64,000 nucleotides of DNA from Ruditapes philippinarum (GCF_026571515.1 NW_026866764.1:248001-312000); one strand, 5' to 3'. Counted from the stretch's first letter, positions 6,709-40,468 are shown. Numbers and translations are program-made. The notes: a model not told the origin generated them from the sequence alone.

Positions 6709-7098
6709 ATAAGTAATAGAAAGAGCACCGAAACACGAGGCTATCTGATTTGTACGAGGGGGCGTAGCCCCCGAGTATAAATCAGATTGCCGAGTGTTTT
6801 GGTGTTCTTTCTCTTTTGTATCATAGTCAAACATAAAAGCACGTTCCCTGTTGTCACAATATGAAACCCCGGCAAAAATGAACCAATGAACGAACATCTG
6901 AATATGACAGTTCGGTCGCTTTCCCTTTCTCTGCCGTCACAATATGTAAACCCCAGCAAAAATGAGCCAATCAATGGGCATGCTCTGGAGTGCGGGTAAC
7001 TAATACCCGCATTCCAGTTAACGCACTGTGCATGTATATGTATACGATTTAACCCTGACACATTTTCAACAGAAAGGTCTCCAAACTATGATACAAAG
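6709..7098 (+). mobile_element. Hairpin-IR element family A (putative non-autonomous Crypton)
   Basis: Hairpin 6718-6812 with a GGGGCGTAGCCCC apex and two CGAG/CGAG mismatches. IR TTTGTATCATAGT at 6815-6827 pairs with ACTATGATACAAA at 7085-7097. Confidence 0.8.
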
Positions 7099-7453
7099 AA
7101 AGAGTAACAATAGCTCTTGTATATCTATTTGGTTATCACGTAATCAACCGGCTGCTATTGTGGATGGTGTGACCTTTCGAAAACCTTAGTTATATATAGT
7201 TCTTCTGGAGTGGGAGTATTTAAATGACTGTAATACTGTATTCATGACAGGTCAATAAAATCAGACTTATGAGACTAAACATTGTAAGGTTACATTTTAA
7301 GGATAAATACAACATAAACTAACATTTTTTTTTGTTCTGTAGGGAATCCATGCATGGAAACATTTTCTGTGTATCCTGATGATTTACATCCAGGCACGCA
7401 ACAATACCACACAATATTTTTGCTAATTATTTTGGTATTTGTAGTGACATAAA

Positions 7454-7627
7454 CCGCCTCCGTGGTCGAGGGGTCGATGACACATCTCTGGCGTGGGTTC
7501 GATCCCCGGGAGATGCTTTGGTAGTTTAGCGCGGAGGAATGTAGTCGAGTACTGGTGTAACTCTCCAGGAACGATGGTTAGGAAACTACCCGCCTATATG
7601 ACTGAAAAGGCGTAAATGAAACAAACA
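7454..7627 (+). mobile_element. tRNA-derived SINE (same family as 22312 and 29320)
   Basis: Box A-like GTGGTCGAG, box B GGTTCGATCCC, and tail ATGACTGAAA...GGCGTAAATGAAACAAAC. Confidence 0.85.
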
Positions 7628-8659
7628 CGCTGGGCAGTGGTTACCTTGAATGGGTCACGTGACTGCCTTTGTCGATTAAGCTGCATGCTCTAAAGCTGAG
7701 TGCTCGAAATCGGGAACCAGTGGTGTACATATACTGTTGGTTACTCTATATATATCTAATTCATCTTTACAGCGTATAAATATCTGACATGTAGATCTAG
7801 TGTGTAAAGTAGAGTTTACTTATAAAGTACATATAATTATACATAACTTGTAAAAAAATGTGCTTGGTTTTAAGTATATGCGGAGAATGTTTTAAACGCA
7901 AACATCGGATACACGCAGTGATAAAGTAGAGGATAATCTGTAAGTATCTACATGCATTCTATGATTCTGTTTCGTGTTAACTGATAATTAGGTGATAATT
8001 TAATTAATGCTATTTATATAAACAGGAGTTAATTATTGACACGCTGGTAATTAAGGCTTAACCATGAAAGGTTGTTTGGATTTTTATAATGTTATAAACA
8101 AAAAGATTATATACATAGAGTCGAATTTATAAATGAGATTGATTTGATTAGTGATTACCTAATTAATTAATGCTTTCTTTTTTTAATGGCAGTGTAGCAG
8201 AATTTCTAACTGTAACGCTTTAAATTTGTTTAAAACGATATTTTTATTTATTTATCTTTTATGAAGAATGAATTAAGATGTGTGTTTTGGATGAACGTTA
8301 AATATTATATTATGTATTATTTATATCTGAATTATTAGTTATTATGTTAACCATTGGCGTGTCTCGCTGTAATACTATACTAATACTGTACCAAAGTCTA
8401 ACGTACGGAACTTGACCGGAAAGTTACATTCAGATAATAAATATAACTAATTAAATAACTTAACACATGATCTGGGCTATTCAAGTGTTGTTATTTTATC
8501 ATATACTTGTATAATAGCCTACCGTCGTGTCGGAAATGGCGTTCGCGAGAGCACTTCGTATATGTTTTGTGTGTAATTTCTTATCGCACATTCCAGAATA
8601 TTTACATATCTATTTGGGATCGGTAAAATAGAGAAAAAGAAAGCCCAACACGGCATAAC

Positions 8660-8767
8660 TGAAAATGTTGCAGGCTCGGTTTGATTCAGCCTGTTCATGG
8701 ACGGTACTGTTAAGTGCAAACTACCGCCCACGCCCCCTAGCACCGGCTTAAGCAGAATTCAACATTT
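8660..8767. repeat. Small dispersed MITE-like repeat (AATGTTG...CAACATT)
   Basis: Partial copies at 28276-28320, 41500-41586 and, inverted, ~39697-39716. Confidence 0.6.
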
Positions 8768-9068
8768 ACTATAAACTGGTACAATTTTGAATTTTGAAAC
8801 ATCCGCAGATGTATTCATTTGGCGGTCATCATGGAACCTTCAACTCAAGCATGGATTGTGAACAAGTGTATAGGTTACTGACCAAAACCCATAACTCGAA
8901 CAGGGATTTTCACTGAATTATTCCCATTTGCGAACATTATACATTCTATGCATTTGCAAGTGCGTTTTTCTACCCGAGAGCTCGTGCTTTTAATATTTGT
9001 TTCGTTTGCACGTGTTAGATGTATATTTCTATGGTGAATTTACATGTTTGTTTTAATATTGTAGTGTA

Positions 9069-10226
9069 ATGAGTGCCGACCACCACGTAGATGAAGGGAC
9101 GCCACCTGTTGTCATTGACAATGGTTCGTTTCGCTGCAAGGCAGGCTTTGCGGGAGATGATTATCCAAAGTACATATTTCCATCTCAGATTGGCAGACCA
9201 AACGACACGGAGAGTGACTCAATAGCAGCAGTTGATGTAAGGGATACATTTGTTGGAGAACAAATACAAAAGAAAAGAGATGTTCTGTCAATAACTTGTC
9301 CCATCGAGAGAGGCATTATTACCAACTGGGATGATATGGAGAAAATCTGGCAGCACGTTTTTCAAGAAGAACTACATGTTGAATCAGAAAACCATCCCGT
9401 GTTACTGTCTGACGTTCCTTTAAACCCAAAAACCCATCGCGAGAAGATGTGCGAAGTTATGTTTGAAACTTTCAAAACGCCAATGTTTTCTGTTTCTTTA
9501 GGGGGAGTTCTTGGCATTTACGCTTTAGGGCGTGTGTCTTCTATAATACTCGATGTGGGCCACGAAGTCTCGCATGTTCTCGCAATTTATGAGAGTTATA
9601 CATTTAAAAACGCAATCGATAAGTTAAATTTCGGCGGGAAAGATTTGACAGACTATATGCTGGAGATGTTGAATTCTAAAAGTGGTACCAGTTTTACGTC
9701 GAATTCTGAAAAAGAGACAGTTCGCGAGATTAAAGAAAAGTTATGCTACACGGCAATAGACTTTGAAAAAGAGATGGAGCGTTCTAATTCCGAGTCCGAC
9801 GCCATTGAACGAACATATAAACTGCCAGATGGAAGTAAGATAACAGTTGGAAGCGAAAGATTCCATTGTCCAGAGGCTCTTTTTCAACCGCACTTATTTA
9901 AAAAAGATTTTCCTGGACTTCATAAGTTTTTTCATTCAAGCCTAATGAAGTGTGATGTGGATGCAAGACCAGATTTAATGTGTAACATGATCTTATGCGG
10001 TGGATGCACGATGTTTCCAGGTGTGAAAGAAAGAATGCAGAAGGAAATGGTCGACCTGATTTCAAAAGATAAAAGAGTAAGAGTTATTGCCCCTCCCGAA
10101 AGGACGTTCAGTGTTTGGATCGGAGGCTCAATCCTAGCCGCTCTCTCATATTTCGGGACCAAAGCTGTGTCGAAAAAGGAATATGAAGAAAACGGCCCTG
10201 GAATTGTGCATTCCAAGTGTTTCTGA
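9069..10226 (+). CDS. Highly divergent actin-family protein (385 aa), intronless CDS
   Basis: VVIDNGS...[49 protein letters not shown] and GPGIVHSKCF*. A splice acceptor at 9063-9064 lies just before the ATG, with a possible 5'UTR donor GTAAGT at 7940. Confidence 0.96.
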   Translation: MSADHHVDEGTPPVVIDNGSFRCKAGFAGDDYPKYIFPSQIGRPNDTESDSIAAVDVRDTFVGEQIQKKRDVLSITCPIERGIITNWDDMEKIWQHVFQEELHVESENHPVLLSDVPLNPKTHREKMCEVMFETFKTPMFSVSLGGVLGIYALGRVSSIILDVGHEVSHVLAIYESYTFKNAIDKLNFGGKDLTDYMLEMLNSKSGTSFTSNSEKETVREIKEKLCYTAIDFEKEMERSNSESDAIERTYKLPDGSKITVGSERFHCPEALFQPHLFKKDFPGLHKFFHSSLMKCDVDARPDLMCNMILCGGCTMFPGVKERMQKEMVDLISKDKRVRVIAPPERTFSVWIGGSILAALSYFGTKAVSKKEYEENGPGIVHSKCF

Positions 10227-10933
10227 TTCATCGCTAGTCGACTAATTCGGAGTCAATATACAATGTATCTCAAATATGCAATACTTAATTATTTTTTTAA
10301 AAGCAATAGATATTTACGTGCTATAATTTTAATATAACAATATATTACTCATCACTATTTTTGGCAAGCAACAGATTGGAGTGTTTCCAACATGAAATTT
10401 TCAGTCAAGTGCAAATGAATAAAATCTTAATTTGAAACAGGTGAATGCCTTCGCTAGTAATATCCTAGCAATTTCTATGGGAGAAAATGCATAATTAAGT
10501 ACATTTGCACTTATATGTTACTTGAAAAGTTCAATCAGTCGGTTCTATAACAAAATACAAATAGAGATTAGTTGATTCATCGGTGACAAGCGGAGAAAGC
10601 CGAAGTAATTTTCGTATATGATAATATTACATATTTCTCAATGTAAGGAGTTATACGGAGTTATACGATTGCATTTTAGAAATAACTAACTTTTTTACCA
10701 TGTTTCTACGGAGTAATGGCCAATTCTACATATATAAACATTTAAAAGTTGATTTCTGTGAAAAGTAAGTGCGTTACTTTAACTTAAACCATATTATTGT
10801 ACACTTGACAACATGTTTGGATGAATTAAATATTTTTTTCTTCAAGGCATTAATTATATTCTAATCTAGAGGCGCATGGCTTTAATATTAGCACTGTTTT
10901 TACTTCAAGTATGAAATTATTCCTAACAGTTAA

Positions 10934-11276
10934 AGCTGCATGCCTCCGGGTGAGATAAAATAATTCAAGAAAATCAAACTTAATAAAAATGTAGTGAGGT
11001 TTAAAGAAATGTAAAAAGATTCAAGATAAAAGTAATAATTCTAATTAATGTGCCATTTATGATCGAATTTGCAGTATTTTTCACCATATTTCGCCTGGGT
11101 TAATAACGCAGTAAGGGCTTTTTTGTATACTTTGGCAAAATACATGTAGGCATATTGTAAACGCTGTTTGCAATATGTACCGTTAAATCATTTTTTGTTC
11201 ACTTCACATTATTTTTCTTTTTTATACATTTTCAAAATTTTCACGAAAACTAACAGGAATCTGGAGGCATGCTGCT
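10934..11276. mobile_element. Kolobok-like MITE (TTAA target, AG...CT termini)
   Basis: TTAA|AGCTGCATGCCTCCGG ... CTGGAGGCATGCTGCT|TTAT. A related left end is at ~2302-2360. Confidence 0.7.
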
Positions 11277-11278
11277 TT

Positions 11279-12234
11279 ATAGAGAATAACATGCTACTGT
11301 CTTTTGATATCAATTTTATCAGGCGAGGCTGATATGGGCTAGAAAGGGCGAGGCTTGCCGAGCCCTTTCTGCCCATATCAGCCGAGCCTGATAAAATTGA
11401 TATCAAAAGACAGTAGCATGTTTTTCTATTTATCATGTAACACATAAAACTGTCATAACTACAAAATAATCTACTTTTAAAAAGCGAATTTCGTAGAAAT
11501 GGGCATTTCTGTTCAAAGAAATAATTCTTGAAAACAAATTCCTCCGCCCCTCAAACTTTAAATTTGTAAATGGCGGCCATACTTTCTTTCGACTCGAGAT
11601 TATTTCCTGTGATAAAAGATACAACAGAATGAAACACGATAAAAGTCTTACCTTTAAACATCGATCGAAAAAAATCCCTAAGAATCACATAGACTTTTTT
11701 ACTGCAGGTTTGTCTTGAATTGTCAATTTCAAAAGTTCACAATAATTTCAATCAAACAAAAGTCAAACGGCAATCAAACACAAGCTACACAAACATGCGT
11801 CTTATTTTTTAAAAGAAACAATTTGTTCACTTGTTAAATAATAATCCGGCGAAATAAAGTAAACTTTTACAAGTTCTCAAAGAAAATCGTCAGCCTGTTT
11901 GTTATGATTACATGTATAGTATGACGTGAACATCTATGATGTCATTTGCAATATAAACTATGACGTCACTTCATCTAGTTGATGCGCTATCTAATTTATT
12001 CGTAATTGAAATCGAAATAATAAATAAATAGATATCGCATCTTGATTCAAGACTTGTAAGGGTATTAGAATACATTGTAGAATTCACATGCTGGTAATAT
12101 GAGAATATAAGCAATTGAAAAAAGTCCGTGAAAATGGGCGGGGCTTAGTTTTGATATCAGGTTACTGACCTGATATCAAAAATAATTATCAGGCAAGTGT
12201 TATCAGGCAGTTACCATAGCAGTTGCATGATAAA
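11279..12234 (+). mobile_element. Hairpin-IR element family B (putative non-autonomous Crypton)
   Basis: 150-nt hairpin 11279-11429 with two CGAG/CGAG mismatches. IR TTTATCATGTAAC at 11429-11441 pairs with GTTGCATGATAAA at 12222-12234. An internal palindrome TTTTGATATCAGGT..ACCTGATATCAAAA lies at ~12149-12182. Confidence 0.8.
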
Positions 12235-14227
12235 AACATATATACAAGTTTGATATTATTATTAGAATTGTGTAGAATAGTTTGGTATTAATGCACCATG
12301 AAGTGTTCCTAGAAATACAAACACAATATATATGTGTATTGAGGATTTAGCAAATGTTTCCATATATTTTAATTTCAATTGTTGCTCAACGAATCCTCGA
12401 TAAAAGTTTCTATTTCCCACCTCTATTTTTAGGTGCATGTCCGCATGCTTATCTCAGTTAGCTTATCTTGTTACTTTTTCGTAAATGTGTTTCTATGATA
12501 AAGATCAGAGCTTGTAAGCTACATGTAGTTTGTTGGCTGAAGAATACAAAAATCTGGACCAAGAGGTTTCAAATGTAGGAAACAATCTCAGGTGAAAGAT
12601 AAGGTTCAACTAAAGCTTTTTACTACCAAATTTTCTATGCCTTTTTACTATCATATTTACTTTGCCAAATTCTGTTTAAAAATATTCTTAATGGTTTAAA
12701 ATATGTTTTCATATATCATTTTATCTGATATTATTTACTATGCAATATACATGTAACTGTATTATGTTTCATTACTTTAATACTTATTATTTTATTTTTC
12801 TACCTCATGTAAAATAAAATAGTTGTAAGTGACGCTGTTTAGTATTTTTCCCCTTTTTTAGCCCCACTGATGAGATTTTTTGCCCCTGTAAGATTTCATG
12901 CCCCGACGGCGAATTATATATTTATTATGGCATTGCCACAAGTATATAAGTTGCCGGGCGGCTGAACTGTACTCTCTTTATGGCTTTACTGCCGACATCC
13001 CGAACAAAAACCACACCAATTGGAACATCCGGCTATTATTCTTATCCAGAGTTTGACGGAAATGACCAAAAAGAAGCGATTGACCCTTTTTATATTTACA
13101 TAATCTCTTAAATTAAATATAAACAGATGGGAAAAAAAACTTCTGAAATACTGCTAGTTGTAAATTACACGGTTCTAATCATGTTGAGCAAAAATAATCT
13201 TTCGTTATCTGATGCTGATAAAGAAAAAAACTTGTTTAGAAAAGAGCATAATGGGTCTTTAAATCTTGTGAAATTATAAATATTGACAGGGAATGTGTTA
13301 TAATATACATGTATACGTTACTGATATTAAGTACAGACTATAATATTTAAAGATATACTATGCTCATATTTGAGTAATGTACTTTAAACAAAGAAATTTG
13401 CTAAAACCTATGAAATCCTTACTGAATATGTCTAATTTGAATAAACAGATGAATTTACTATGTATTGGAAGCCACGTTCCCTATTATAAGGCAAGTAAAG
13501 TTGTTTTTTTTTCTTAAAAAAACTGCCAGTTTTTTAACGACACTATATATTTATATTGTGTGTAGAGTTTTAAATATAACACATCTACTTTCTGTGAAGT
13601 CAGAACATCTTTATATTTTATATTTACAAAGAGACTGTGTAGCAATCACCAATATTTCCTGATATGAAATTTGAGCATAGTATATCTTTAAATTATTTAT
13701 TTTGCGTCGTTTCTTTGTTCAATGCAATATAAAAGCTATAATATAATGTTTAACGTTTTTGGCCTTGAGCGATAATGGGTTATACTTAAAAACAACAACA
13801 ACAACAACAAAACGGGAAGTAGCACTTGAAATACATTTTGTTTGTTTGGTTTAAATTATAGCTTTATCAATATTATACATGTTCAAAACTGATAAGCTTT
13901 AAGGTCACTGAAATGTTCCTATAATATTGAGCGACAGTGTGTGCCATTTTATAACCGCACGAAAAATCGACTAGATGAAATCATTATTTGTCCGCATCCA
14001 AGCATTTCAAATAAAGTAGTAAAATATACCCGGCAGAACAGTCGGAAACTATAGGTTTTTTGTAGTCTACATTTTCTTTATTAACATGTGACTGAACATA
14101 TTGTCATAGTTTGCGTCAGCTATATAATTCAGATTAATATAAAACTGAAATCTGGGAGCCATTTTACTACTTTTTGACCATACAACGTGTAAAATATTGG
14201 ATTTAGAGATATTTATAAGCGTGCAAA

Positions 14228-17200
14228 ATGGCCGTTGAGAAAGGTGAGTTTATTTATAGATATTGATTAATAAATATATGTTGTACACAGGTGAAATACG
14301 ACTATAAGACTTGTAGGAATATTGTTGAAACGTAATAAAATGGTTATAACACTGTATCACCAAAAATGCTTGCTAATGCACATACAACATTTAGAAACAT
14401 TCGTATAAAAATAATAATCCTTAAAAGTTCTTTCTGGCGACTGCGTATGATCTGCATGTACATTAAAAGCCGTGAGCTACAAGTTGACCTTAACATTCAG
14501 TGGTAAATACAGGAAGAAAAAAAAACTTCACAATTTTACCTGTTTCGTGTAACATGTAAAATTATGTAATAGTTATAGTTCAGATTTTAAAAAAATATGG
14601 AATTTATTGCAAGCGTAGCGTAGCGGAGCGCAGCAATAAGTTCTATATTTTTTAAAATATGAACTATAACTGGCTTACCGTTTGACCCACTTTCGTGGAA
14701 TAAGTCAGGTACGAAGTGTCGGTACAGCTGTAATGTAATACGAGTCCCGCCCTATAGATTGACAGGCCAACACATGGTCTGAGTGTTTTGACCTGTCAAT
14801 CAAAGCTTTGGGTTTTTTTATGTATTTTCATCATGTAACAATTCTGCGATCAGGTTGTGTTTGACATAATATATATAGCAAGAATCATATTTTTGAACCA
14901 TTTCATGTGGTCACGGTGCTTGATATTGCTACGCAGGTTTTATATGCAGACACAAGCAACAAGAGGCAAAAGCTCAGGTAAATATTTTATAAAAAAATAT
15001 TCTCGAATTCTCGCAATATCTAACTTCATCGTTATCTGAATGAAAATACAAATTGTAACATGACTAGGCGCGCAGCTTTTGTACGCCCAACCAGTACCGA
15101 ATCTCAAAATAGATGACGGTAAATTATTCAAACATAACATGGTTAATCTGCCTTAAATGCTGTTGCAATTATTAAAAAAAACTTTGAAAATCAAATTTCA
15201 GTGATTTCTTTGATATTTGCATTTTGCAGGCCGATTTGAAAAGCTTTTGTCATCATTCTGATGACATTAAGAAGAAACAGAAATACAGTGCCCTATAATA
15301 CAACGAAAAACAACAACTGGGCAGTGCACGTCTGGAAAACCGCAACCTACAACCGGAGACTCAGCAAGAGCCTGGTTATCCTATTCCCGTTCAAATAGAG
15401 CAGTTCCGTTCATGTGCATGTGCAGCAATGGATTTTTTGGTCGCAACAATTCATCTGTGAAATTGAAAGGAAAAATGGAGAATTCTATCCTCCAACAACT
15501 TTACTAAACATTGCTGCAATGCTACAACGGTATCTTCGAAATGAAAAATCCATGCACGTGAACTTTGTTAAAACTGAAGATCCTTTTTTCTGAACTTTGC
15601 AGAATAATGGATCGACGCATGCGCGAGATGACTATACGAGGGTATAGGGGTCGAAGTCAACTGTTAAAAAAGTGGAGTTTTTTTTAACAAAATGTGGAAA
15701 AAAGTTTGTCATGGAATTATGAAACATGGATATTCTGTATGATTATTTTAAGATAATTATGTGTTAGTTTCGAACTTTGAGATTTCTCTCACTCCATGTC
15801 TATTATACTGTTTTCTAATGTTTGAATTATAACCATGACGGTATAGGGAATGTACTGTTTCAATAATTTTTATACATGTAAAAGCTTGGATTTATAAATA
15901 ACCGTATGAAATCGCTTTCTTATTTGTTTACTTTATTCGCATGCCACATATATTGTCTAATTTTAAACTCCGCCCATATCCATAACGTCATATTTGCCAG
16001 ATACCACGTCAATACCCATTAAAATATGTCTACTTATTTTTCACATACACCAGTCCCGGTATAGTGTATGCAATATATTTCAAATAAATTTGAGCATTTG
16101 ATTGGATAAGAAAGTGGGACAAACGGTAAGATACATCTACGGGATATATTGAGGTGTTTTATTAAAAATGTTTAAAAAGAATAGCTTAATATTTTTCATT
16201 TTTTGTTCTAATACTTAAACAATAACAGAAATATAGCAATAATACAGTTATACCACTTGTAATAACACTGTTATACCACTTGTAATAACACTGTTATACC
16301 ACTTGTAATAACACTGTTAAATATGAATTGCAATAATACAGTTATACCCATTGTAATAATACTGTTATACCACTTGCAATAAGTAGAGGCAAGTGTGCCT
16401 TTAGTCCATATTGGCACACTTAGTGATTTATTTGCCCGAGGGCAAATTTGAACCAAGTGTGCCAATATGGACTAATGGCACACTTCCCCCATGTAATGAC
16501 CTGTTTAATGCATGTTTCGCAGCAATTTTTCAGACTGGAATAAATTCAAATAATAACGTAATTGTTCTAATATATTTATTAATTGGATGTCCGTGTTGTC
16601 CGATTATATTATCTAAATCCATCAAGCGATTCGCTAACGATTTCAACGTCCTTTCGACGGCCATTTTTTGCGATGCGGTTGTCAATTACGTAACGTGTAT
16701 AACGCGCGGACGTTCTGCCGTTACTCTATAACAGGTGGTGACAAGAAAAGCATTGATGCAAAGCATCAAAGGGCGTCCAAGCAAGAAATGCAGCAGGTGT
16801 AGATGAACTAGTAGATATATGATGACAAGATATTCTTAAAACAGTTAAACTGTTCAATGGTTCATTGGTATATCACTTTTGAATGAAAGAACGAAAGACA
16901 TTGTTCATTATCTATAACTTTGATTGGCATGCTAGAAATTAAAGTATTACTTGTTATTTCTTTATGATCGTGGTTATTAATAGCAACGGATATACATGTA
17001 TACAATCACTTATAATCCATATGAGTAACGCATGATCAACACCACACTTGTGTAATTGTCCCTTATTATGTTATCGCTATTAGCGAAGACCCCCTCTTAA
17101 GGTATCTGTTCACACTTAGTAACAATATGACACTTGTTATATTACCATGTTGATCATGTTGAGCATAAATGTTTATTATACACTAATTGTAATACATGTA

Positions 17201-24989: not shown

Positions 24990-25404
24990 ATTTTCGTGTC
25001 TTAAATTATTTGCTTATCATTTTTGAATTATAATTATGTATTGAGAATTTTGGGTTTATTTCGAAATAAAGTGGTAAGTATTTTCATATTTCAGTATAAA
25101 AAGAGATTAATTATATTTGAATGTCATACAAAGAAAATGCGTGTCACTTTTCTTTGGGAATTAACTAAATATGAAATCGTGTACATTTTAAGGAAATCTA
25201 ATTCGGAATATATATAGAGGATATTGTATGAGTGTAAGTTCAATACTGAATTTATTGCACGAGTTGAATAAAATTATATTATGCGAGCCTCTGGCGAGCT
25301 TGACATTATATTATTCAACGAGTGCAATAAATTCAGTAATGAACTTACACGAATTTAATATTCTATTTATCACATACCCAAAATAAAGACCTTTTAAAGT
25401 AAAA

Positions 25405-27990
25405 CAAGAAAATCATTGATGCAAAGCATCAAAGGGCGACGCCAAAAGAATTTGATCCAGATTTGCACCTAAATACTTAACAAAAGATGTGTACTTTATA
25501 GCAGTACCATTACATGTGACCTGGAGGCTAGGGCCAGTTTAAGTTGAAACTTAAACCAAAGAAGAATAGACTCTGTCTTGCCAAGATGCAAAGACAATTT
25601 ATAGTCAATTAAGCAATCTTATAAGACTTATGCTATAAGAAAGAATTTCTTCAGATTTATATTTTGAGACACAAGGATTCCTGAGTCATCAGCATATAAT
25701 CACTGGCACGAGTTTCGGACCTGGGAAGAAAAAATATGACCAGCGATGACCAGATTTGATAAAAAAACTGTGTTTATAAAAACCAAAACAAAAAATGTAA
25801 ATAATGATCCCCTTAAAAATATACTATCAACTTGAAGTATATTTTTAAAGGGGGTCATTATTTACATTTTATTTTGGTTGTTGACACTTTTAAGATGAAC
25901 ACAGGTTTTTTTATCAATCTGGCCATATTTTTTCTTCCAAGGTCTGATACTCGTGCCTGTGATGATTATAATAAAAGCTTATTGCTTAGGGTTGAAGACA
26001 TGTAATTGACATATATTAGACATAAAAGAGGACCCTAAAATGAACATCAGGGGGACAGATAGGTACTCCCAGAGCAGTAGTAGAATGAGTAACCAGCCAC
26101 ATCAACCAGCTACTATCAGAGATAAGACTTAAACCATGTAAGAATGTCATTATATATGGCAGATGCTTGAAGTTTCATGAAGAAGAAGAAAAACAACTTT
26201 CTTCATCCCAGATGTGCAGTATAGTGTGTGTGTTCAACTGTATCAAATGCCCTTTTGTAGATCTAAAAGTATAATGCAGTACTGCCTTTGTCCATTTCAA
26301 ATAATGCAATCTGTTAAATGAATCAAACATGAGTCAGTTGAAAAAACCACTTCTAAACCCTGACTAAACTGCCTGACCATGACTCAAACCCATGACTTTC
26401 AGAAGACCAACTGAGCTATCCGGCCTGCTACACATTTTCTCTTTAATAATGAAACAGTTCTAAACCACAACATATTTCCCCACTATATCGATTTGTGTTC
26501 GTGAATTTCTTATGTTACAGAGCATAGGAAATTGAACTCATGCTTATATGCAGTCACAGGATGAGAAAAACTTTGAGCTTGACCAGAACTCAAAACCTGT
26601 GACCAACATAAGAAATTTTACGAAGGCTGATTTGTATTTTTTGCATCAAGGGCACCGGGCAAAAACATGAAAATGCAACAAACAAACCACTTTTGGTAGA
26701 TTGTATTTTCATGTTTTCATCTGGCGCCCAGTTACTTTTTATACTATGTTGGTTTTCATGTGGCACAAATCACCCACTATAATTTAGTGCACAAATTTAT
26801 TCAAGGGCAAGTAACAATCTACTCTATGTACAGTCTGTTGTCGGGTTGACTCAGGAGACCTGGAGGTTGAGACCGGTGTCTCTTCATTACAAATAGATAA
26901 GACCGAAGCTGTTTTTTTCAAAAACTATGCACATGTTAGAAAAAAAAATAGATAAACTATTCAGAATATGATTTTTGAGACTTTATTAATTACATTGCTT
27001 AGTCCAAGTTTAAGGACATTTTCAATCAATACATGTTTTATTCATTTATAAACTTTAAATGAAAGTCTCATCCCTTTAATAATAATGACATAACTGTATC
27101 TCTTTAAATGCAGAAAATATAAGTCTCAACATATCAATATACTACTGTCTAAGATATACATGTATGCACATAACATTAATAATTCCCAGTTTATATTAAA
27201 TAAATATGAATCCTAACATTAACATGCTTTTGATGACCTGTACAACTTGGTGAATTATATACAACAAAAAATATATTATAAGTAAATACCTAAGATAGAC
27301 AGAAAAGAACAAATAATTTAGTAAACATGAGTTACTTCCCTTAAAATAAAGAAAACCTGAAACCCAAAAGAACACCCTAAACAGCAAAATTATGAAATGC
27401 TGCAGGTTCAGTTTTATCAAGCCATGCAAATTAATGGTAATGTATTCATAAAAAAATAGATGGCCATGTGTCAGCAGTAATTGCAGAAAATCGGATAGCT
27501 TTCAACATCCGGATACTGGTACACTTTGTAAAAACAACCATTCTGCGCAACAGCATAAATGTAATAAGGATAAAATCAATAGGATAATCGTTTACAACAG
27601 TTCCATTACCTATCCTTATACTCAATTGCAGGTGAACTTTCTTCTTGTAGAAAATTTTTGAAAATGTATAAATGAATGAATGAACCGATACGGCCTCAAT
27701 CTAGACCACAACGATATTCGAAATCCGGGTTTTAGTATTGTCATTAAAACTAAGGGAAAAGCTGTTAAACTTAACCTGAAATTTCGTGAAAATAATATCA
27801 CAATGCACATGCTTTTTATAAAAAGTTATTAAATACAAATATAATAACACATTTGTTTACTTGAATTTTACGAATCAAAATAAAACTAATTAACACAACA
27901 TGAAATTAACTGCTAATAATAACAGCTCCTTCCATAGGCAAAAATAAAAAGCGTTCCATAATAGACGACGCCGCTCACCGGCGTCGCCAA
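25405..27990 (-). mobile_element. Helentron/Helitron2-type non-autonomous element nested in the family D element
   Basis: Boundaries are fixed by the empty site in the 40117 copy (GAAA^TAAGAGTCATTTT), with no clear TSD. Ends CAAGAAAATCATTGATGCAAAGCATCAAAGGGCG and GACGCCGCTCACCGGCGTCGCCAA. Confidence 0.8.
25701..25961. mobile_element. Foldback MITE (CAC(A/T)GGCACGAG termini) nested in the Helentron-type element
   Basis: Near-complete palindrome centred at ~25829. TSD is not clean. Confidence 0.75.
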
Positions 27991-28649
27991 TAAGAGTCAT
28001 TTTTCATTGACGCGCCTATAGTATAACGATAACATATAGCGCGTCTTTACACTATGTTTGTATAACGCTAATGACGTCACGTCAAAATATATGCATGGCC
28101 GTGCAATACCATATTTATGGAGTCGCAAAATCGGCTTGGGTGTGTGATAAATATAATTAATCAAATATTGACACTTCTTAAGAACTGAAGTTTGACTCAT
28201 TTTGTCTACTTTGAAATGAAACTGTCAATAGAGAGAAATAATGAATACCTAATGAAAGCCCAACAAGACAAAATTGAAAATGTTGCAGGCTCGGTTTGAT
28301 TGAGCCGGTTCATGGACGATTCAAATTAACACAAAATGTCATTTCACAATTGTGTTTTATTTTTAAACCATGCAGGCTCTACGAACTAACTTGAACTTTC
28401 ATCTTGATATCCCCAAAATCTGTAATGGACAGTTCCAGAAATGCGGGCTAGACAAGTCCATTACAGATTACATTACACATTTGAGCTTATTGTTTTTACA
28501 TTGATATTTTCAAGTTAATGTGTCTCATTTACAATTTTACAATTTTAAAATATGCAGATTTACAAATACATTTTGTTATTACTAATGCTTAATGCTTCAA
28601 AAAAAAAAAATGCTATTATTAAATATTTGCTTCGGAGTCGTGCATTTTT

Positions 28650-29308: not shown

Positions 29309-29319
29309 TTATATGTACT

Positions 29320-31322: not shown

Positions 31323-31790
31323 TGATTAGTGCACGTGGGCGTACTTATAAAGTTGCCGATATATGTACTTGTATACGGTTGTACAGACTGATATAATATT
31401 ATACACTTATAATAGACTGCAAATTTAAACGCGTTTTATGTAGCAAGTACGCCACAATAAAAAAACTTCATATACAAATTAACAAATGTACTTTTAGTAT
31501 TTCTGTTTATTTAGATATAGAAACAAATGTATAATTTTATCGATATAAATACATGTGCCACTTAATGACCTTACCTGATGAAATTTAACAAATTGTGTAC
31601 GCATACGTTTCTAGATAAACCTACACGTCCGAATAACTGCGACAGATTGATTTATTGTCCATTTAGTTTGCAGTTCTCCTTAATTTTTACAGTAAACAAG
31701 ATACGGTCAAATATTGCAAATACAAGTTGTAAGTTATCATATCTATGCGACGTGTTTGATCGGATTTTAGTTTGGTTTTACTCACTCACA

Positions 31791-34700
31791 ATGGCAGTGG
31801 AACCAGGTGAGTTCATTTATATACATCTTTTATAATTATTATGCGGAAGAAATTAAGCAAATATAACAAAACTGCTGTTTAAACATATGTCTTAAACCAT
31901 ATTATATGGTTTAAGACATATATGTTTAAACAGCAGTGTTGTTATTATTATAGTACTATTATTATATTATCAATATACTATTATTAATGAATATGTACGT
32001 ATGTACTTTTGTTTAATACTACATGGCCATTCTGAAATTTTTCATTTACACACCAAAGGTACCAGCTTGTGCATATGTATGTGTATGTGCATATATGTAT
32101 GTTCTTGAGCTTTATGGTCAGACCCTACCCCCGGCTTGAACCGCCCCTGTAAACGGTCAATTAAAAATATTTTATAAACTGCAATCTTTACTTTTTTGAG
32201 ACTTGACGGTTTATTCTTGCGTAATTAAATGTTTTATAAACAATATTAATGAAAAAGACAGATGCCCCATTTGTGGGTCTAATCCAGGAGATCAGTATAT
32301 CCGGGAATAGACCCCAGGGTCAAAACCAAAAAGTATCCGTTTTCTTTATTGTATTATATACAAGTTTTACTTCTGAAATATACACAGGGTCTCCCTAGTG
32401 TCTTAGGGATATAATTGTTAACCTCCATCAGTAATATTAAAGGCGAATGAGTCACCATTGTATGTTATGTGACAATGTAACTATCAAACAAACAAAAACT
32501 CATGACTGATAAAACATTTTATTTATTTAATTCGTCATCTCCTAGCCATGTGCTATTAAATGACCCTCAGGGAAATAAAAAAATTTCAATTACACAGACG
32601 AAAATTTTCTTATCAGTATGTCTATGCATGTATAATATGTTCATTGCAAATAAAGTTGCGATAAGCTTTGAATGAGTATTTCATATGTTGTATATAGCTT
32701 CACAATACCAAATTTATTACAACATTGAACATTAATTTCGTTTTCAAAAAATATTAAAGGCTAAATGTACAGTCGGGTCAATGTCGAGACTGTGAGTGTG
32801 ACCTTATCGGGGCATGAAAGGAAATCAAAGTTGTTTAATCGTGAATGTATAAAAGAAAATTAAAGGAATCTGAAGTCCATGTGTAATCAATGGTTGTGCC
32901 TGCTTCAAGCGTTATCAGGCTTTCTTGTGAATTTGTTGAATTTCTGTACATGTATGCATGTCCTTGGATTAGCGGTAGTGTGTTAGCTTGTTTTTCTGGT
33001 CCACGTACATCGTTAGATGATTGATAGTGCGATAGTTTCAAGCGTTAATAAGCGAAGCGCCTTTGTGTGCTTTTCTTTCCATATATGTCGTAATGCGAGT
33101 GGTTGTGCGATAGTTTCAAGCGTTATCAAGAGTTTTTGTGTTTTTTTCTGGTCCATATATGTCGAAATGCGAGTGGTTGTGCGCTATCAAGAGTTTTTGT
33201 GTGTTTTTTTCTGGTCCATATATGTCGAAATGCGAGTGGTTGTGCGTTTTCAAGAGTTTTTGTGTTTTTTTCTGGTCCATATATGTCGTAATGCGAGTGG
33301 TGGTGCGATAGTTTCAAGCGTTATCAAGAGTTTTTGTGTGTTTTTTCTAGTCCATATATGTCGAAATGCGAGTGGTTGTGCGTTATCAAGAGTTTTTGTG
33401 TTTTTTTCTGGTCCATATATGTCGTAATGCGAGTGGTGGTGCGATAGTTTCAAGCGTTATCAAGAGTTTTTGTGGTTTTTTTTCTGGTCCATATATGTCG
33501 TAATGCGAGTGGTTGTGCGATAGTTTCAAGCGTTATCAAGAGTTTTTGTGGGTTTTTGCTGGTTCATGTATGTCGCTAACTTAGTGGCAGTGCCTAATTT
33601 ACTTAAAGCGCTACCAAGCGTCTTAATTTGTTTTTTCTGGTCAGTGTATGTCGTTAGCTTAGTGGTAGTGTTACAAGCGTTCTTGTGTATTCTTCTTATT
33701 GGGGCACCAACAAGTGACTTCTTGGCTTGAACATGACATGTCCTGGAGTCAATGAACAACCCCTTAAAATTACAAGTATGAAATAATGAATATCTTGGTC
33801 CGAAAGAGGATCTTCTGAAATATCTAGTCTAATGTAACAGCTACGACATTGAAAACGACATTTAATGAAATACCCGTATTGCATAATGTTTATCAAGATG
33901 AGCATTGAAGATATAATCTTATGATTTCACAAATTTGTTATTTTATATTCAGGAAGTTATAGGATGCTTGGCTTACTGCATTTTATTTTTCTTAAAACTA
34001 TTCATAGGAGATGCTAAATATGTAAGTAAACTTAACGAGGAGGAAAAGAAACGGGCTAAAGAAGAGCTTCATGAACTGAATGACAAAGACAGAGAGGGCG
34101 CTGTACAGGCGTTACGAAAGTGGGCGCTGGAACAGAAATGGCTCAAAACCATGACAGGTAAATTTTGGCTTCATTAACAATGTATTTGGCTTGAAATATT
34201 ATATATTTTCTTCATATTTTCTAGATAAAGGGTAGAGTAATTATAAAAGGGAATTGCACAAGTTTTATCTGTGTGACTGTAGCATGTCACTCGTGCAAGC
34301 GATGTAGTTACACTTTTCGTCGGCTTTAATTGAAGCTCACTACCCAGGCATTTCGTTAGAAGTGTTAAGTTATCTCTTAACAAGGGTCAATGAATATATT
34401 TATATAAACTTTTAACAATTAATAAGTGCATGAATTAAAATAGATATTCAGATTGAGCACGTAAAAATGAACACTATACAAATGTTGGCTTGAATACAGA
34501 TCTATTTGCTGTCAAGACATTTTTACCCCGAGCGAGCTTATATTAATTGAACCGTACGTCTGCCCATCTAAACCGACAAGTTGGGTATATATTAAGTTCT
34601 TCCTGTACCTATGGCTTCATAATTTACACACTTACTTTTCAAAACAAATTACATGAATTTGGCAAGTTGTTATTCCTTTTTTAGTGGTTTGACAATAGAT

Positions 34701-37700
34701 ATGGTTAAACAACATGTTCTGGGAAGTTGGATATATCTTCAATATCTTCTAGTAACTTCATTTTTTTAATTTTGTCTTCCAAACTTGGTACGTTGGTACT
34801 TTTAATGGTCCTCTAACTTTGGATGGAGTTTATTTATTTATTTATCTATTTTCATTTTCCAGACACTATTTATCATCCATACTTGACTCTTAGTTTGTGC
34901 AATTGTTGGTTTATAAAGAATTTATTTTATTTCGATTGTGTAGGAAGCTATAAGCTTATTATAGACACACTTTCGAATCCGTTCCTGAAACCAACCAGTA
35001 CTGAGCAATGAGTGTAAAGTTTCTTGCTCAAGGAATAACGAATAGCCCCTGACGAGGTTTGAACCCATGCGGCTAGCGATCATTAGATTACTAGTCAGAC
35101 GCATTAACCACCCGGCCGTGCCGCCACTTATGCAATTGTTGTTGTTGTTTTTTCAGATTTCGAATTCCTTCTACGGTTTATTCGCGTAAGGAAATACAGT
35201 CAACTCGGGGCTAGGGAGACCCTTGAAAACTACTGGACAAATAGAACTAATGTCCCTGAATGGTTCAAAAACCTCGACCCCGCAGACGAGAAAATACACA
35301 AAGTTCTGCGTACTGGGTAAGTTTCCAAAGTATCAAATATTTCAACGTTTTTATTTTTCAAATTAGAAAAATATTACTATAATCGAATTAATTTGACTAG
35401 CTTGAAATAACTACATTCTTAGTTTCTTTCAAAGTGTAAAAAGGTGGTGAATAGTAGAGATATCGTATAAAGATTGACCATCAGTGTCATAAAAATAAGT
35501 ACACCGTACTTTCGAATTTCGTTGTTTTGATTTTATCAAAACCATAGTGTTATTGTTTTTTATGTGTTTGTTTGTTTCGATACGTCGCGATGTTCTAAAC
35601 GGATCATCGTAGTGTTTTTATAAGTCGGAAATAAATAAATTCATCAGAATCATAAGTTATCCACTTTTGCTAAATCAAGACTCACAAACACGGCAAGATG
35701 ACAATTGACCATTTTACTCAATTTCCTAGTTCAATTGTCAGGCCACCACCCCGAGGATCGAACCAGCGCGCACATAATTGTCAGTCGGACGCTCTCCCAA
35801 AAAAATGAAGTGTTGAGAAAATGTTTCATATGCATGTGTGAAATTTGAATAAAATAATTGCAGAATGATGTACTGTCCAAAGGGATACGACAAACACGGG
35901 CGCAAAGTTATATTTGGGAGCATGGGTAAGTTTCTTTTCTGCAGATCTCGAAAAATATTTCCAATCCTGTCAGGTTTAAATACCTTAAATCAATGGTAGG
36001 GTACTTCGTCATCGCGCATCTGCACGATGCTCCCAATCAAACTTAAGTCAATCTTGGGCGCACCGCATTATTTTTTGATATTCTAACGATTTCTTGATAT
36101 TCTAACGATTTCTTAGAATGAAAAAAAATTCTACGAGTCGACAAAAACAACAACAACAACATAACAGTCCGATTCGGGGCATTTTGCAGGTGCGCGATGG
36201 CGTATCATTCTGCCATTGTTTAATTTTTTCTTGCATAAAAAAATAGTTCTAGCAGTGTTTTCTGCCAATACGTCTGACACATTAACTCATGAACGTGGCC
36301 GCATACTACGGCATATATTTCCATATTATTATTTTTAAGTTTTCAATACAAAAAGAAATGTTAGCAATGCTTGCATAACAATGACATGACAATTATTTCT
36401 TGTAGCTATTAAAATAATACCCATTTTGTAAACATGGGATTAACTTATAGCATATTGATAGATTGATGATTTTTCAAAGAAGAACAACTTCTATTTAATG
36501 TTTCCTTTTTACTTGTTTTCCGTTTGACTTTATTAATTTTGTAATCATTTACAAATGAACCTACAAGTTAAGGAACTATCCTCATTCCTTTACATTTTAT
36601 TTTATAGGGACAAAACTATCTCTTAAATTTTATCATAGATTTATCTTTAAAAAATTATTTTAGAATTGTAAGAACTATTCTTTACATTTTTTATAATAGT
36701 TGGAACTGTCCAATACATTTTATTTTTAAAATAACTGATTTTCATTTTGTAATTTTAAAATGACCAAGGGAAATTCTTCTTATATACAGTCCTTCCCTAT
36801 TATTTTACAGGAAGTCAAACCGATAACAGACGGACTTCGTCCGAAAAAAACCCAGTCCACAATGATCAAAAAGACAAAATGGCGTTGCGAACGCCTGATT
36901 GGACGAAAAGCTACCGCTGCGCTAATCACCAATATTGCTGGTGTCCCAATTATAAATATTGTATTTCATTGTGTCCCATTATATAAATAAATAAGTTTCT
37001 ATTTCTATTACAGACAATATGGACTTGAGTATGATGAAATCTAAAGAAGGACAAGACTTGTTGTACAAAACCAGCTGCCTTCTCTTTGATTGGCTGGCTT
37101 ATGATGAAAAGGCACAAGTGAACGGAGTAGTATTCGTGTCCGACTATACTGGAGCGTCCATGGAATTTATCAAATTTTGGAACCCAGAAGCAGAAAAGAA
37201 AATGTTGGCTTATTTCCAGGTAAATGACACTAAATTTCTTGTTTGGGCTAGGGTTTGNNNNNNNNNNNNNNNNNNNNNNNNNNNNNNNNNNNNNNNNNNN
37301 NNNNNNNNNNNNNNNNNNNNNNNNNNNNNNNNNNNNNNNNNNNNNNNNNNNNNNNNNNNNNNNNNNNNNNNNNNNNNNNNNNNNNNNNNNNNNNNNNNNN
37401 NNNNNNNCATTTTTGAGAGAAATAAAAAAACATTTAATTTGATCTATTTGAACTTTTATTTAAACTAATAAAATGAAATAGTTACCCATTAAGTTAGCAA
37501 TATAAAAATTTAAAGATTAGAATTATATTTTCTTTTGCAATTTTGTATTTTCGTCAAGTGAAATGTTGAAATTCAATAAATAAAGTTAGATAGATCAATA
37601 ATACTAAATTCGATAGGTAATAAGCTATAATTATACTAAAACTTTACGCGTTGACTCTGCAAAGATCTTGGAGTGTAGGAGTAATATTTGAACTGTAATG

Positions 37701-40051
37701 TATTTTCATAACAAGGATTTATTAATATGTGCAATACTATTTATTTGTATAGAAATCGTTACCCATGCGGTTCAAGGCATTCCATTTGTACAAGATGCCT
37801 GCTTTCATCGATGCTTTGTTTGCCATCATATCACCTTTTATGAGCCAAAAGTTTAAGGACAGGGTAAGATTGCTATAAAACATTTATTACCAACACAGTT
37901 TTAGTTTAATTTTAGACTGTATTGTCATATATTTTTCTTGCAAAGGATACAAGTCTTGCTTACAAACGACATGTGGGGCGTCCGCGGCCGAGTGGTTTAG
38001 GTCGTTGACTTCAAATCACTTGCCCCTCACCGCTGTGGGTTCGAATCCCGACTGGGACTTTGGATTCTTTTATGTGAAGAAGCTTTCCAGCTAGCTTACG
38101 GAACGTCGGGGGTTCTACTCAGGTGCACGTTCGTGTCTAAAACAATGCACAGAAGGGCACCTGAGGTCTTCCTCCACCAGTAAATCTGGAACGTTGCGAT
38201 ATGACCTATACTGTGTCGATGTGATGTAAAACCAAAAACAAACAAACAAACGACATGCCTTTCATTTTAGTTGTACGTATTCTATGAAAGTTATCTCGCT
38301 TTAGTAATGAGAAAAATGGTGAAATTTTCCTGTTTGGATGTAGTGCATTATTGCATGACATCCATTCACTGGACATTTTAATAGATAAATCATGCTTTTC
38401 CGGTTAATAATAAATTCTAACTCTTGAGCTGCTTGAACTGAAAAGTTTTAAGCATTTTATCTTCAATTCTTGATAACCTCAACATTGACAATGGACAGTT
38501 TCAAATGTAGAAGCTGGTCAAATGATACTCAAATCCATTTATGAAATTCCCTTGTTTATGACATGATTGTGAGAAGGCAATAATCTATGTTTATATATAT
38601 ACCAGCTAATTTGGTTAGATTTTAGTATATTTAAAAGTAGTCAAAGATATAACCCTTTGCCTACTGAATTCGTGTATTGGACATTTCCTTCTTTGAATTT
38701 AGAACGGTTCATTAATGGATTAAAGGGACTCAACTAAGGTTTATTGGCGTGACGGTACTAGAAATATTTTTTCCGAGATCAATGTTCCAATTGATGTAGG
38801 TCTAGACTAAAAACTTTTGTGCAAAATTTCAGATCATTCACTCACTCCGTTTTTCCAAAATAATCATTTTAGTTATCTGGTCTTTTCTGATGGCAAAGTC
38901 AAAATAACATTCGGTTATAGACGAACATAGATTTCATTATCTTAAGAAAGCCTTTTTGACACCAGTGTTGAGTTAACATTTTGTTCTTTTTTAAGATGCA
39001 CTCACATGGTAAAAGTTTAGTAAAGATATACGAGGAACTTGGCATGGAAGTGTTCCCTGATGAATATTTACCTGACGATTATGAAGGTCCTTCAGCCGGA
39101 ACTAGACAGGAAATCATTGGTAAAAGTCATTCTTAAGAATTGTACACTTTATTTGTTTTATATATATTCTCTTTGTAAAAAGAATGTATCATACATATAC
39201 ATGTATATGATTTTTATAGGCCCATTATGCCTCAAAAATTCATTATTTTTCAATTCTTTACAGTCGAAATGTCAAACTTTTGTTAAATAATGGAGTCAAA
39301 GCATGTTGGTTGTTTTATAACTGAGTACATTAGTCGTGGAAGTTATGTGTTGTAAATGTAACAAAATGTAAGCAAAGTAGTATTTTGACTTCCATACAAA
39401 ATACTGTTTCATTATAATTACCCCTATTGCCAAAAGTAAAAATGGTAGAAGATAGTTCATGAATATTACTACTTAGTATGTTGGTGGAAACTGTTACAAG
39501 ATACCAAAAATAAAGTTTAAAAAAATATGATAGCATTTCTGATGCACAATGGGCCTTTCAGTATTAAAAATAACATGTTTCTCTATTAATTTAATGGCAT
39601 TGGTAAACAATTGTCACGGATTTCATTTTAGAATTTAGTGATGATTCGAGATCATCCATTCCAATATCTTTTAATGTTTAAGATGTAATATCGCTGAAGC
39701 CGGTGCTAGGGGGTCTGAGAGTTGTCGCCCCTTCCATTACTTCTCAAAATGAATGTGGAATATTTAGATTTTTGTTGTTGTTTTTTTTTGTAGGTTGTTG
39801 TTGTTTTTGTGCTTTCATTGCACTCGAAAGATCTCTTTTTCAAAATCATAAGATTTCAAAAACTTTTTTATCAAACTAACATGATACATGTTTCCCATGT
39901 TACAGAACAAAATATTCAAGATATACAGAAAGAAGAATTCAGGAAATACATGTTGGAAATGTCTAGTGGTAAATATTACGTGGACACAGAAAAAAGAAAA
40001 TCCGCGGAGAAACCTCCCGAGGCCTCCTTCAGAAAACTAAATGTGGACTGA
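31791..40051 (+). CDS. CRAL-TRIO (alpha-TTP/clavesin/pinta-like) lipid-binding protein, paralogue B, intact, 324 aa
   Basis: Exons 31791-31806, 34008-34157, 35157-35316, 35864-35925, 37014-37219, 37753-37863, 38996-39119 and 39906-40051 total 975 nt. All junctions are GT-AG and phase-consistent. Contains PMRFKAFHL and ends SFRKLNVD. Confidence 0.95.
32890..33690. repeat. Minisatellite with alternating ~65-bp and ~52-bp units
   Basis: Core TCAAGAGTTTTTGTG(T)nCTGGTCCATATATGTCG(T/A)AATGCGAGTGGTTGTGCG, with or without ATAGTTTCAAGCG. Diverged units lie at both edges. Confidence 0.92.
34920..35128 (-). mobile_element. tRNA-derived CORE-like SINE
   Basis: Minus strand reads GGCCGGGTGGTTAATGCG...GGTTCAAACC...TCCTTGAGCAAGAAACTTTAC...AGTACTGGTTGGTTTCAGGAACGGATTCGA, then an A-rich tail. 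Confidence 0.85.
35992..36217. mobile_element. Degenerate MITE (imperfect ~47-bp TIRs)
   Basis: AATGGTAG..CGTCATCGCGCATCTGCA pairs with TGCAGGTGCGCGATGGCG..CTGCCATT. Confidence 0.55.
37258..37407. other. Assembly gap (150 N) in intron 5 of paralogue B
   Basis: Run of N. Confidence 1.
37974..38245 (+). mobile_element. Full-length tRNA-derived SINE with 12-bp TSD
   Basis: Box A GGCCGAGTGG, box B GGTTCGAATCCC and (CAAA)n tail. TSD ACAAACGACATG at 37962-37973 and 38246-38257. Confidence 0.93.
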
Positions 40052-40116
40052 TTGTTCAACAAAACAAACATTATTTGTCGGACGAAAAAAGACGAAAATA
40101 TGAACACATTTATTAT

Positions 40117-40468
40117 ATAGAGGATATTGAATGAGTGTAAGTTCAATACTGAATTTATTGCACGAGTTGAATAAAATTATATTATGCGAGCCTCTGGCGA
40201 GCATAATATTATTTTATTCAACGAGTGCAATAAATTCAGTATGGAACTTACACGAATTTAATATTCTATTTATCACATACCCAAAATAAATACCGTTTAA
40301 AGTGAAATAAGAGTCATTTTTCATTGACGCGTCTATAGTATAACGCTAACATTTAGCGCGTCTTTACACTATGTTTGTATAACGCTAATGACGTCACGTC
40401 AAAATATATGCACGGCCGTGCAATACCATTTTTACGGAGTCGCAAAATCGGCACGGGTGTGTGATAAA
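40117..40468 (+). mobile_element. Hairpin-IR element family D, intact ~350-bp copy (putative non-autonomous Crypton)
   Basis: Hairpin 40117-40269 with three tandem GA/GA mismatches. IRs at 40269-40282 and 40455-40468. Confidence 0.88.

Follow-up and report, generated by a model that had tools for sequence, protein, structure and literature searches.

Strand-asymmetric hairpin ends of putative Crypton transposons in the clam Ruditapes philippinarum

Four families of transposable elements, here called A, B, C and D, lie in a 64,000-nucleotide (nt) stretch of the genome of the clam Ruditapes philippinarum (GCF_026571515.1, NW_026866764.1:248001-312000; hereafter the window), and each of them begins with a long imperfect hairpin whose irregularities mark one DNA strand. 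We consider it very likely that the four families belong to a single superfamily moved by a CryptonA-type tyrosine recombinase, i.e. a protein with a QRICH1-like N-terminal domain and a DUF3504/integrase catalytic domain, and that their ends have a role in cis. Judged from sequence, family C would be a decayed and internally deleted carrier of the recombinase gene, and A, B and D would be gene-less riders. The whole account, in which one such superfamily is moved through a step on a folded strand, is in our view slightly more probable than not. The Crypton recombinase and the absence of target duplication were already known; what is new here is a defined end structure for animal Cryptons.

On the sense strand, the predicted order of parts in the superfamily is a terminal motif (GTAATAG, GTATAGG or TAGAGGATA), the hairpin, the left copy of an asymmetric terminal inverted repeat (ATIR-L), the gene in autonomous copies, and the right copy of the repeat (ATIR-R). 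The hairpin is imperfect and 70-190 nt long, with one to five tandem G.A pairs (YGAR facing YGAR) and often a GNA apex. The repeat measures 12-21 nt, and ATIR-R forms the other terminus. The elements of the window and their parts are as follows.

6266..6575, minus strand: second copy of family A, inverted, with a 29-nt apical deletion between two CGAG motifs and the right end missing
6713..7098, plus strand: family A, non-autonomous element, with GTAATAG at 6713-6719 (from fold, repeats and copy number)
6718-6812, plus strand: hairpin of family A, with two CGAG/CGAG sites and a GC-GTA-GC apex
6813-6827 and 7085-7098, plus strand: ATIR-L and ATIR-R of family A (from repeat comparison)
6844-6887 and 6927-6971: internal direct repeats of family A
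11279..12234, plus strand: family B, non-autonomous element, starting (A)TAGAGAATA
11283-11427, plus strand: hairpin of family B, with two CGAG/CGAG sites
11429-11441 and 12222-12234, plus strand: ATIR-L and ATIR-R of family B, with one mismatch between them
14566..16129, plus strand: family C, predicted deletion derivative of a recombinase-carrying element, starting GTAATAG and ending ...CGGTAA
14572-14670, 14675-14694 and 16110-16129, plus strand: hairpin, ATIR-L and ATIR-R of family C
15261..15635, plus strand: broken remnant of a CryptonA-type tyrosine recombinase, from its N-terminal QRICH1-like domain (from translation, Pfam and tblastn)
25215..28151, plus strand: family D, long form, 2.9 kb, non-coding, with its hairpin at 25215-25365
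25366-25379 and 28138-28151, plus strand: ATIR-L and ATIR-R of the long form of D
40118..40468, plus strand: family D, short form, 351 bp, probable deletion derivative of the long form
40118-40268, plus strand: hairpin of the short form of D, with one TGAG/CGAA and two CGAG/CGAG sites
40269-40282 and 40455-40468, plus strand: ATIR-L and ATIR-R of the short form of D

An assembly gap at 37258-37407 falls inside none of these elements.

A preliminary description of the window had reported four families that share one asymmetric plan. DNA folds and repeat comparison confirmed both the families and the plan, and the places were right, but the ends of C had to be moved to 14566-16129 and those of D to 25215-28151 and 40118-40468. 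The four had also been called unrelated. One plan does run through all of them, but terminal motifs are shared in pairs: GTAATAG is common to A and C, and B and D both have the hairpin end (A)TAGAG[GA]ATA and the other end ...TGATAAA. With DNA parameters, the long hairpins of A-D fold with z-scores of -9 to -21, and the plus strand is the more stable one in all four families. Its free energy is -36.3 kcal/mol (z -13.3) against -30.2 for the minus strand in A (97 nt), -70.7 against -70.0 in B (149 nt), -30.1 against -24.8 in C (105 nt) and -51.3 against -47.4 in D (149 nt), i.e. differences of 6.1, 0.7, 5.3 and 3.9 kcal/mol, respectively.

In DNA, 5'-YGAR-3' is the context of sheared, stable tandem G.A pairs. 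Symmetric 2x2 loops number two in A, two in B and three in D, and all of them are tandem G.A in this context, six being CGAG/CGAG and one TGAG/CGAA, in the numbers that had been listed before. The apex is GC-GTA-GC in A; in C it is ambiguous and can be read as GC-GTA-GC or as CG-TAG-CG. Directly 3' of each hairpin stands a 13-20-nt repeat whose reverse complement is the opposite terminus (for B, this was checked by eye, with one mismatch). The polarity on the G.A strand has no exception: the hairpin comes first and the partner of the repeat lies downstream.

To place these ends in their genomic setting, we aligned 30 D and 11 C copies with their flanks and counted copies in the 1.41-Gb clam assembly, of which the window is part (contig C15251, 248001-312000). 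The D elements run from TAGAGG... to ...GATAAA (+/-1 nt) and the C elements from GTAATAG... to ...CGGTAA. Three pairs of occupied and paralogous empty sites were found (C in L066 vs. L076, C in L076 vs. L005, D in L017 vs. L030), and they bear out the earlier remark that no clear target-site duplication is present: insertion is precise, occurs without target duplication and takes place next to A-N. In the flanks, a single base is conserved: with respect to the G.A strand, all of 11 C copies and 28 of 29 D copies have an A at -2. This single A is the only echo of the A-rich right end.

The families differ widely in number. The apex of A gave 1443 + 1443 matches, with a tandem spacing of 384 bp, and that of B gave 325 matches, with dimers at 956-959 bp. 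For C, 38 apices and 50 right ends were counted. For the short form of D, there are 1584 or more candidates, and the 40 that were scored are 98-100% identical; the long form has at least 40 full copies with 94-98% identity. The interior of this long form is non-coding and is itself a high-copy unit. Within it, a tRNA-like stretch on the minus strand (window 26340-26425) is probably derived from a short interspersed nuclear element, the whole 2.5-kb interior being amplified as one unit. A scan over about 330 kb of other clam loci added nine or more hairpin families that follow the G.A code and polarity of A-D. Of 13 clam families, 12 have G.A and G.T features that favour one strand.

The structure of the hairpin is under selection, as its variants indicate. 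The mismatches had been described as neither random nor strand-symmetric, and this holds: the G.A sites are kept, changes are compensatory and G.T exceeds A.C. Among 29 distinct D-type hairpins, three G.A sites are kept in 24-25, and four pairs of the stem show compensatory double changes. In these stems, 96.6% of the cells pair, compared with 34-45% when the partner is slid. G.T accounts for 60 cells and A.C for 8 (about 17 vs. 6 independent events), and all the variants that occur in several copies are G.T. In the C copies, the hairpin and the inverted repeats are 99-100% identical, compared with 81-96% for the interiors. Furthermore, nine pairs are changed on both sides in six coral-type metagenome hairpins, a number reached in none of 500 shuffles. 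A regular period of the G.A sites along the stems was looked for by eye only, and none was found. From the conservation of the G.A sites, the covariation, the excess of G.T and the difference in identity between ends and interior, it follows that the ends are cis-acting elements in which pairing on the plus strand is preserved. The hairpin ends are thus conserved, covarying cis elements, with an asymmetry that marks one strand.

We then looked at the coding capacity of the families. The remnant in family C contains stop codons, and its catalytic domain is absent. It matches Pfam QRICH1 with an E-value of 5.8e-5, which is below the curated cut-off, and it was also found by tblastn with proteins that have QRICH1 and DUF3504 domains. 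The same broken piece of the N-terminal domain is kept in all the 1.56-kb copies of C. In contig C14310, a C apex (26-nt pattern, 140417-140442) and a C right end (25-nt pattern, 142863-142887) lie on the same strand, and between them is a single open frame of 350 amino acids (aa) with a QRICH1-like N-terminal domain and DUF3504. Its N-terminal domain (141327-141491) is 80% identical to the fragment in the window, and its DUF3504 match (141576-141929; 54.9 bits) covers model positions 2-119 of 162. This copy is known from match coordinates and not base by base; on these, it is a predicted 2.5-kb long form of C, from which the 1.56-kb copies are deletion derivatives.

Nearly all matches to the N-terminal domain with more than 50% identity are in contigs that also hold C-type ends. 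These contigs include a sister family whose C-type right end differs at three positions, and gene and ends have therefore diverged together. Full-length relatives in a public protein library have 440-480 aa, with QRICH1, DUF3504 and a weak Phage_integrase match, and HxxR and GH[RK]S...Y motifs; P0150, P0159 and P0170 combine DUF3504, a Phage_integrase match and HxxR...Y motifs. The only relative with a solved structure is QRICH1 itself. A tblastn search with 51 recombinase relatives against the examined clam loci gave matches in C copies only.

The link between hairpin and recombinase was also examined independently of the clam. We drew 51 metagenome contigs by recombinase similarity alone (alignment A3) and oriented them by the gene only. 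In 31 contigs, the sequence extends 400 nt or more to the upstream side of the estimated start, and 18 of these have a hairpin of 69-147 nt upstream of the gene; none was found in the 20 contigs with shorter upstream sequence. It stands 26-1956 nt upstream of the frame, mostly less than 600 nt. Among 21 2x2 loops on the sense strand, 13 are GA/GA, five more are one substitution away and none is TC/TC. G.T pairs again outnumber A.C mismatches (29 vs. 4), and the sense strand is the better-folding one in 14 of 16 loci. The apices are often GC-GNA-GC (GAA, GTA, GCA and ATA were observed). Outside the upstream stretches, only two G.A-type hairpins occur in these contigs of about 200 kb together.

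Three of these metagenome elements are complete (L079, 2.06 kb; L081, 3.7 kb; L088, 2.0 kb): a 12-nt repeat follows the last base of the hairpin without a gap, and it is matched by a partner beyond the gene. In L078, an intact frame of 386 aa matches QRICH1, DUF3504 and Phage_integrase and has HxxR...Y motifs. The hairpins and repeats of L079 and L087 are like those of clam C. In both, GTATAGG is the exact point at which the flanks part, preceded by a-t or a-c, and the rule of an A at -2 holds in these flanks too. L090 starts with GTAATAG, as do clam A and C. A link to a Crypton recombinase had been put forward from the window alone, and it was borne out, in that the gene-carrying relatives (C14310 and 18 of the 31 metagenome contigs) encode a tyrosine recombinase and not a DDE or HUH enzyme. 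These recombinases are only 25-50% identical and come from many projects, yet they agree in the place and the strand of the hairpin; repeated capture by another transposon therefore cannot explain the association.

Apart from these upstream hairpins, L085:2186-2270, L120:3355-3467 and L117:2457-2641 hold hairpins with G.A pairs or a GTA apex that lie downstream of the recombinase gene or opposite to it. They probably belong to neighbouring elements.

Several observations weigh against the account. By scan, 13 of the 31 metagenome loci have no long hairpin; five of these 13 have GTATAGG upstream with a short or truncated hairpin. The frame in C14310 has 350 aa, compared with 440-480 aa in full relatives, its DUF3504 match stops at position 119 of 162, and it may lack the catalytic tyrosine. 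In families A, B and D, there is no coding remnant, and no coding relative or autonomous partner was found for them. Among the first 100 of the 325 B hairpin places, none is beside a DUF3504 or RepHel match, which says little about family B as a whole. The assignment of A, B and D to the recombinase superfamily is made by the common plan, the G.A code and the end motifs, which make it a probable one.

A tandem copy of D suggests how the ends may work. The D-D junction at L009:1842-2018 folds as one extended hairpin, in which ATIR-R is paired with ATIR-L and the joint is in the basal stem; the sequences of A-D imply this geometry as well. In the mechanism that we propose, the ends would be joined in a circle or in a tandem copy, ATIR-R would pair with ATIR-L and the hairpin would be lengthened, the junction then lying inside the basal stem of one folded strand. 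The recombinase would recognise this folded strand, and the G.A pairs would tell which strand it is. One strand would be exchanged with a duplex target after A-N, and replication would resolve the single-strand product, as at integron attC. Since the two ATIRs are 70-190 bp of palindrome apart, they cannot serve as half-sites of the usual duplex core. Action of the recombinase on a folded single strand is suggested by the strand asymmetry and by this geometry, and we see the chances for and against it as evenly balanced. The more specific analogy, in which animal Cryptons would move like integron cassettes, with a site that would arise only through the folding of one strand of the joined ends and with sheared G.A pairs as strand mark, is tentative and in our estimation a little short of an even chance.

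The hairpin elements stand head to tail far above chance expectation. At the D-D junction in L009:1842-2018, GATAAA is followed directly by TAGAGG, and a foreign right end ...GGTTTATGTGATAA adjoins the start of D in the left flanks of D in L006 and L030. At array loci including L066:1329-1500 and L071:1364-1497, C is inserted one base past the hairpin of another family (J), and the right end of C lies 6 nt ahead of the hairpin of family K. Dimers of B with B (at 956-959 bp) and of A with A (at 384 bp) were also seen; C5808, C8153 and C473 are among the array contigs, known by coordinates only. These arrays look like cassette arrays, or like a preference for resident ends as targets.

The rival that survives best accepts the same recombinase superfamily and places the reaction on duplex DNA. 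The ends would then be protein-binding sites on a double-stranded circle, perhaps in cruciform, and the strand asymmetry would serve another role, e.g. as a replication or priming signal on the circle or as a transcript structure. A double-stranded circle is indeed the accepted Crypton model (PMC3212892, PMC13565253), most tyrosine recombinases use duplex sites, and nothing in our data detects single-stranded DNA. However, the half-sites of a duplex core are 6-8 bp apart, compared with the palindrome of 70-190 bp found here, and folding is needed to bring the ATIRs together. Moreover, one strand is favoured in 12 of 13 clam families and in 14 of 16 metagenome loci, and it is constant relative to the gene, whereas a cruciform folds both strands, and optimisation of one of them would bring no gain. 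We therefore regard the duplex reaction as unlikely, while it is the alternative that deserves most attention.

The next rival is that A-D are non-autonomous Helitron2/Helentron elements moved by RepHel, the recombinase gene in C being an old cargo. This was our initial hypothesis, considered likely at first, and it was dropped on the gene copy in C14310, the metagenome hairpins, the lack of a RepHel remnant and insertion sites other than T^T. The resemblance is real: the plan of hairpin plus ATIR is identical to the published Helitron2 plan, read on the opposite strand (PMC3627910, PMC4067079, PMC11417382). On the reverse complement of the window plus strand, the 5' ATIR starts with T and the 3' ATIR is directly upstream of the 3' hairpin; target duplication is absent and head-to-tail arrays are formed. 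The enzyme is also at hand: the genome has at least 94 RepHel matches, many of them intact, which fall into 12 or more lineages and all have DUF6570, a marker of HLE2; eight RepHel lineages were classed as HLE2. Among classical Helentrons, those in L061-L064 (C4213, C14714) and L077 (C6060) have intact RepHel frames of up to 2643 aa. In L061-L064, the 5' repeat is matched by an inverted partner of its own, and a (GTCC)n microsatellite, tandem repeats of 95-165 bp and, at the 3' end, a short perfect palindrome are present; the 3' region of L077 has such tandem repeats (95-165 bp) only.

Against a RepHel origin of the four families stand, first, the divergent recombinase genes (25-50% identity) that carry the hairpin at the same place and strand. 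Second, three RepHel 3' regions (two full copies in L061-L064, and L077) show classical Helentron features and no G.A hairpin. Third, on the Helitron2 strand, the three empty sites are not T^T throughout but A^A, T^G, and either T^T or T^A, the conserved base being a T at +2, and the 5' ATIR was not seen to form a hairpin at the 5' end. A RepHel remnant was found neither in the window by tblastn nor beside the G.A hairpins examined, with one exception in L063. The exception consists of two old D-like copies about 1.3 kb beyond the Helentron open reading frame, which we read as independent insertions. Among the loci covered, i.e. three 3' regions of RepHel genes and 30 loci with a Rep domain, none had RepHel between G.A-hairpin ends. 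All in all, a Helitron2/Helentron identity of A-D is very improbable.

One old D-like copy in L063 (6541-6716, minus strand) has its inner hairpin inverted, with CTCG...CTTG instead of CGAG...CGAG, which resembles a flip/flop inversion of the apex.

The least probable explanation is a function of the hairpin at the RNA level, for example in the leader of the recombinase transcript or as a precursor of small RNAs, its terminal position being an accident. In favour of it, tandem G.A and G.T (G.U) pairs have stability in RNA as well, and it is the gene's sense strand that is favoured. Against it, the hairpin is the exact terminus of the element, with flanks that diverge at the first base, hairpin and ATIRs are kept in thousands of gene-less copies, and the ends of C are far better conserved than its interior.

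Crypton transposons are said to have been reported by Goodwin in 2003. Stable GNA mini-hairpins of the d(GCGAAGC) type and sheared tandem G.A pairs in 5'-YGAR-3' DNA have reportedly been described by Hirao and co-workers and by Cheng, Chou and Reid in 1992. The clam hairpins agree with them in that all G.A sites are YGAR and the apices are GC-GNA-GC; those motifs, however, belong to physical chemistry and to a phage origin, not to transposon ends. The CryptonA group comprises animal DNA transposons with a tyrosine recombinase (Kojima and Jurka 2011, PMC3212892), and even a comparison of 50 copies is stated to have shown neither direct nor inverted terminal repeats in animal Cryptons (PMC3212892). 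A curation guide gives only a short direct repeat for Cryptons (PMC8969392). According to a 2026 review, the mechanism is untested; the circle is taken there to be double-stranded (PMC13565253). In a 2026 study on DUF3504 elements of fungi, clear ends were not found (PMC13465315). In a full-text literature search for Crypton and hairpin, we found no description of ends such as those of the clam elements.

Compared with the known systems, the clam elements share with CryptonA a single tyrosine recombinase gene that matches DUF3504, the absence of target duplication and an excess of non-autonomous derivatives over autonomous copies. They differ in their ends, as published CryptonA elements have no inverted repeats and at most a 4-6-bp direct repeat, whereas the clam elements have a strand-asymmetric hairpin and a 12-21-nt inverted repeat; in addition, gene-less families reach thousands of copies in the clam. 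The likeness to integron attC sites, of which IntI uses the folded bottom strand, lies in the imperfect hairpin with irregularities that mark one strand, the tyrosine recombinase, a crossover point predicted within the basal stem, which leaves a small part of this stem at the opposite end of the unit in its linear inserted form, and the head-to-tail arrays of unrelated units. In contrast to attC, the clam elements have a eukaryotic host and a recombinase of another family, G.A pairs instead of extrahelical bases, longer hairpins, a split-off piece of 12-21 nt instead of 6, and dispersed insertion instead of one attI; they are also known from sequence alone. CTX-phi attP(+) resembles them in that a tyrosine recombinase (XerCD) acts on a forked hairpin of one strand, and in its tandem arrays, but CTX-phi is a phage, its genome is known to be single-stranded, and it has a single dif target in the chromosome. 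Helitron2/Helentron (HLE2) and HINE elements have in common with them an ATIR with a hairpin beside one repeat, no target duplication, T- or A-rich ends and tandem copies. They differ by their RepHel (HUH) enzyme, by perfect hairpins of 5-30 nt and by T^T insertion; those of bivalves carry an inverted repeat at the 5' end, a microsatellite and, in the centre, tandem repeats.

Among the orders of eukaryotic DNA transposons, Cryptons are understood least, and reviews up to 2026 describe the ends of animal Cryptons as undefined and the mechanism as untested. The G.A hairpin with an asymmetric inverted repeat provides a handle for annotating whole Cryptons and their abundant gene-less derivatives, which in the clam number thousands and would otherwise be filed as MITEs (miniature transposable elements with inverted repeats) or Helitron2 elements. 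Defined ends also make the mechanism testable with top-strand, bottom-strand and duplex substrates. If a folded strand is indeed used, a principle known only from integrons and CTX-phi would operate in animals, as the first such recombination system in eukaryotes. It would explain the head-to-tail arrays of unrelated elements, and its different strand mark could be used in tools for the integration of single-stranded DNA. The findings also bear on the origin of the Crypton-derived genes QRICH1, ZMYM2-4 and KCTD1.

Finally, the window holds features outside the four families. Palindromic MITE-like hairpins without G.A pairs are at 6068-6222, 16388-16488, 25787-25875, 31863-31945 and 53100-53256, and the family of the last one recurs in L019, L054 and L066. 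Four clustered actin genes or gene pieces are located at 36-710, 9069-10226, 41954-43093 (minus strand) and 46272-47411. The copy at 9069-10226 has a lower Pfam Actin score than the other two complete copies.

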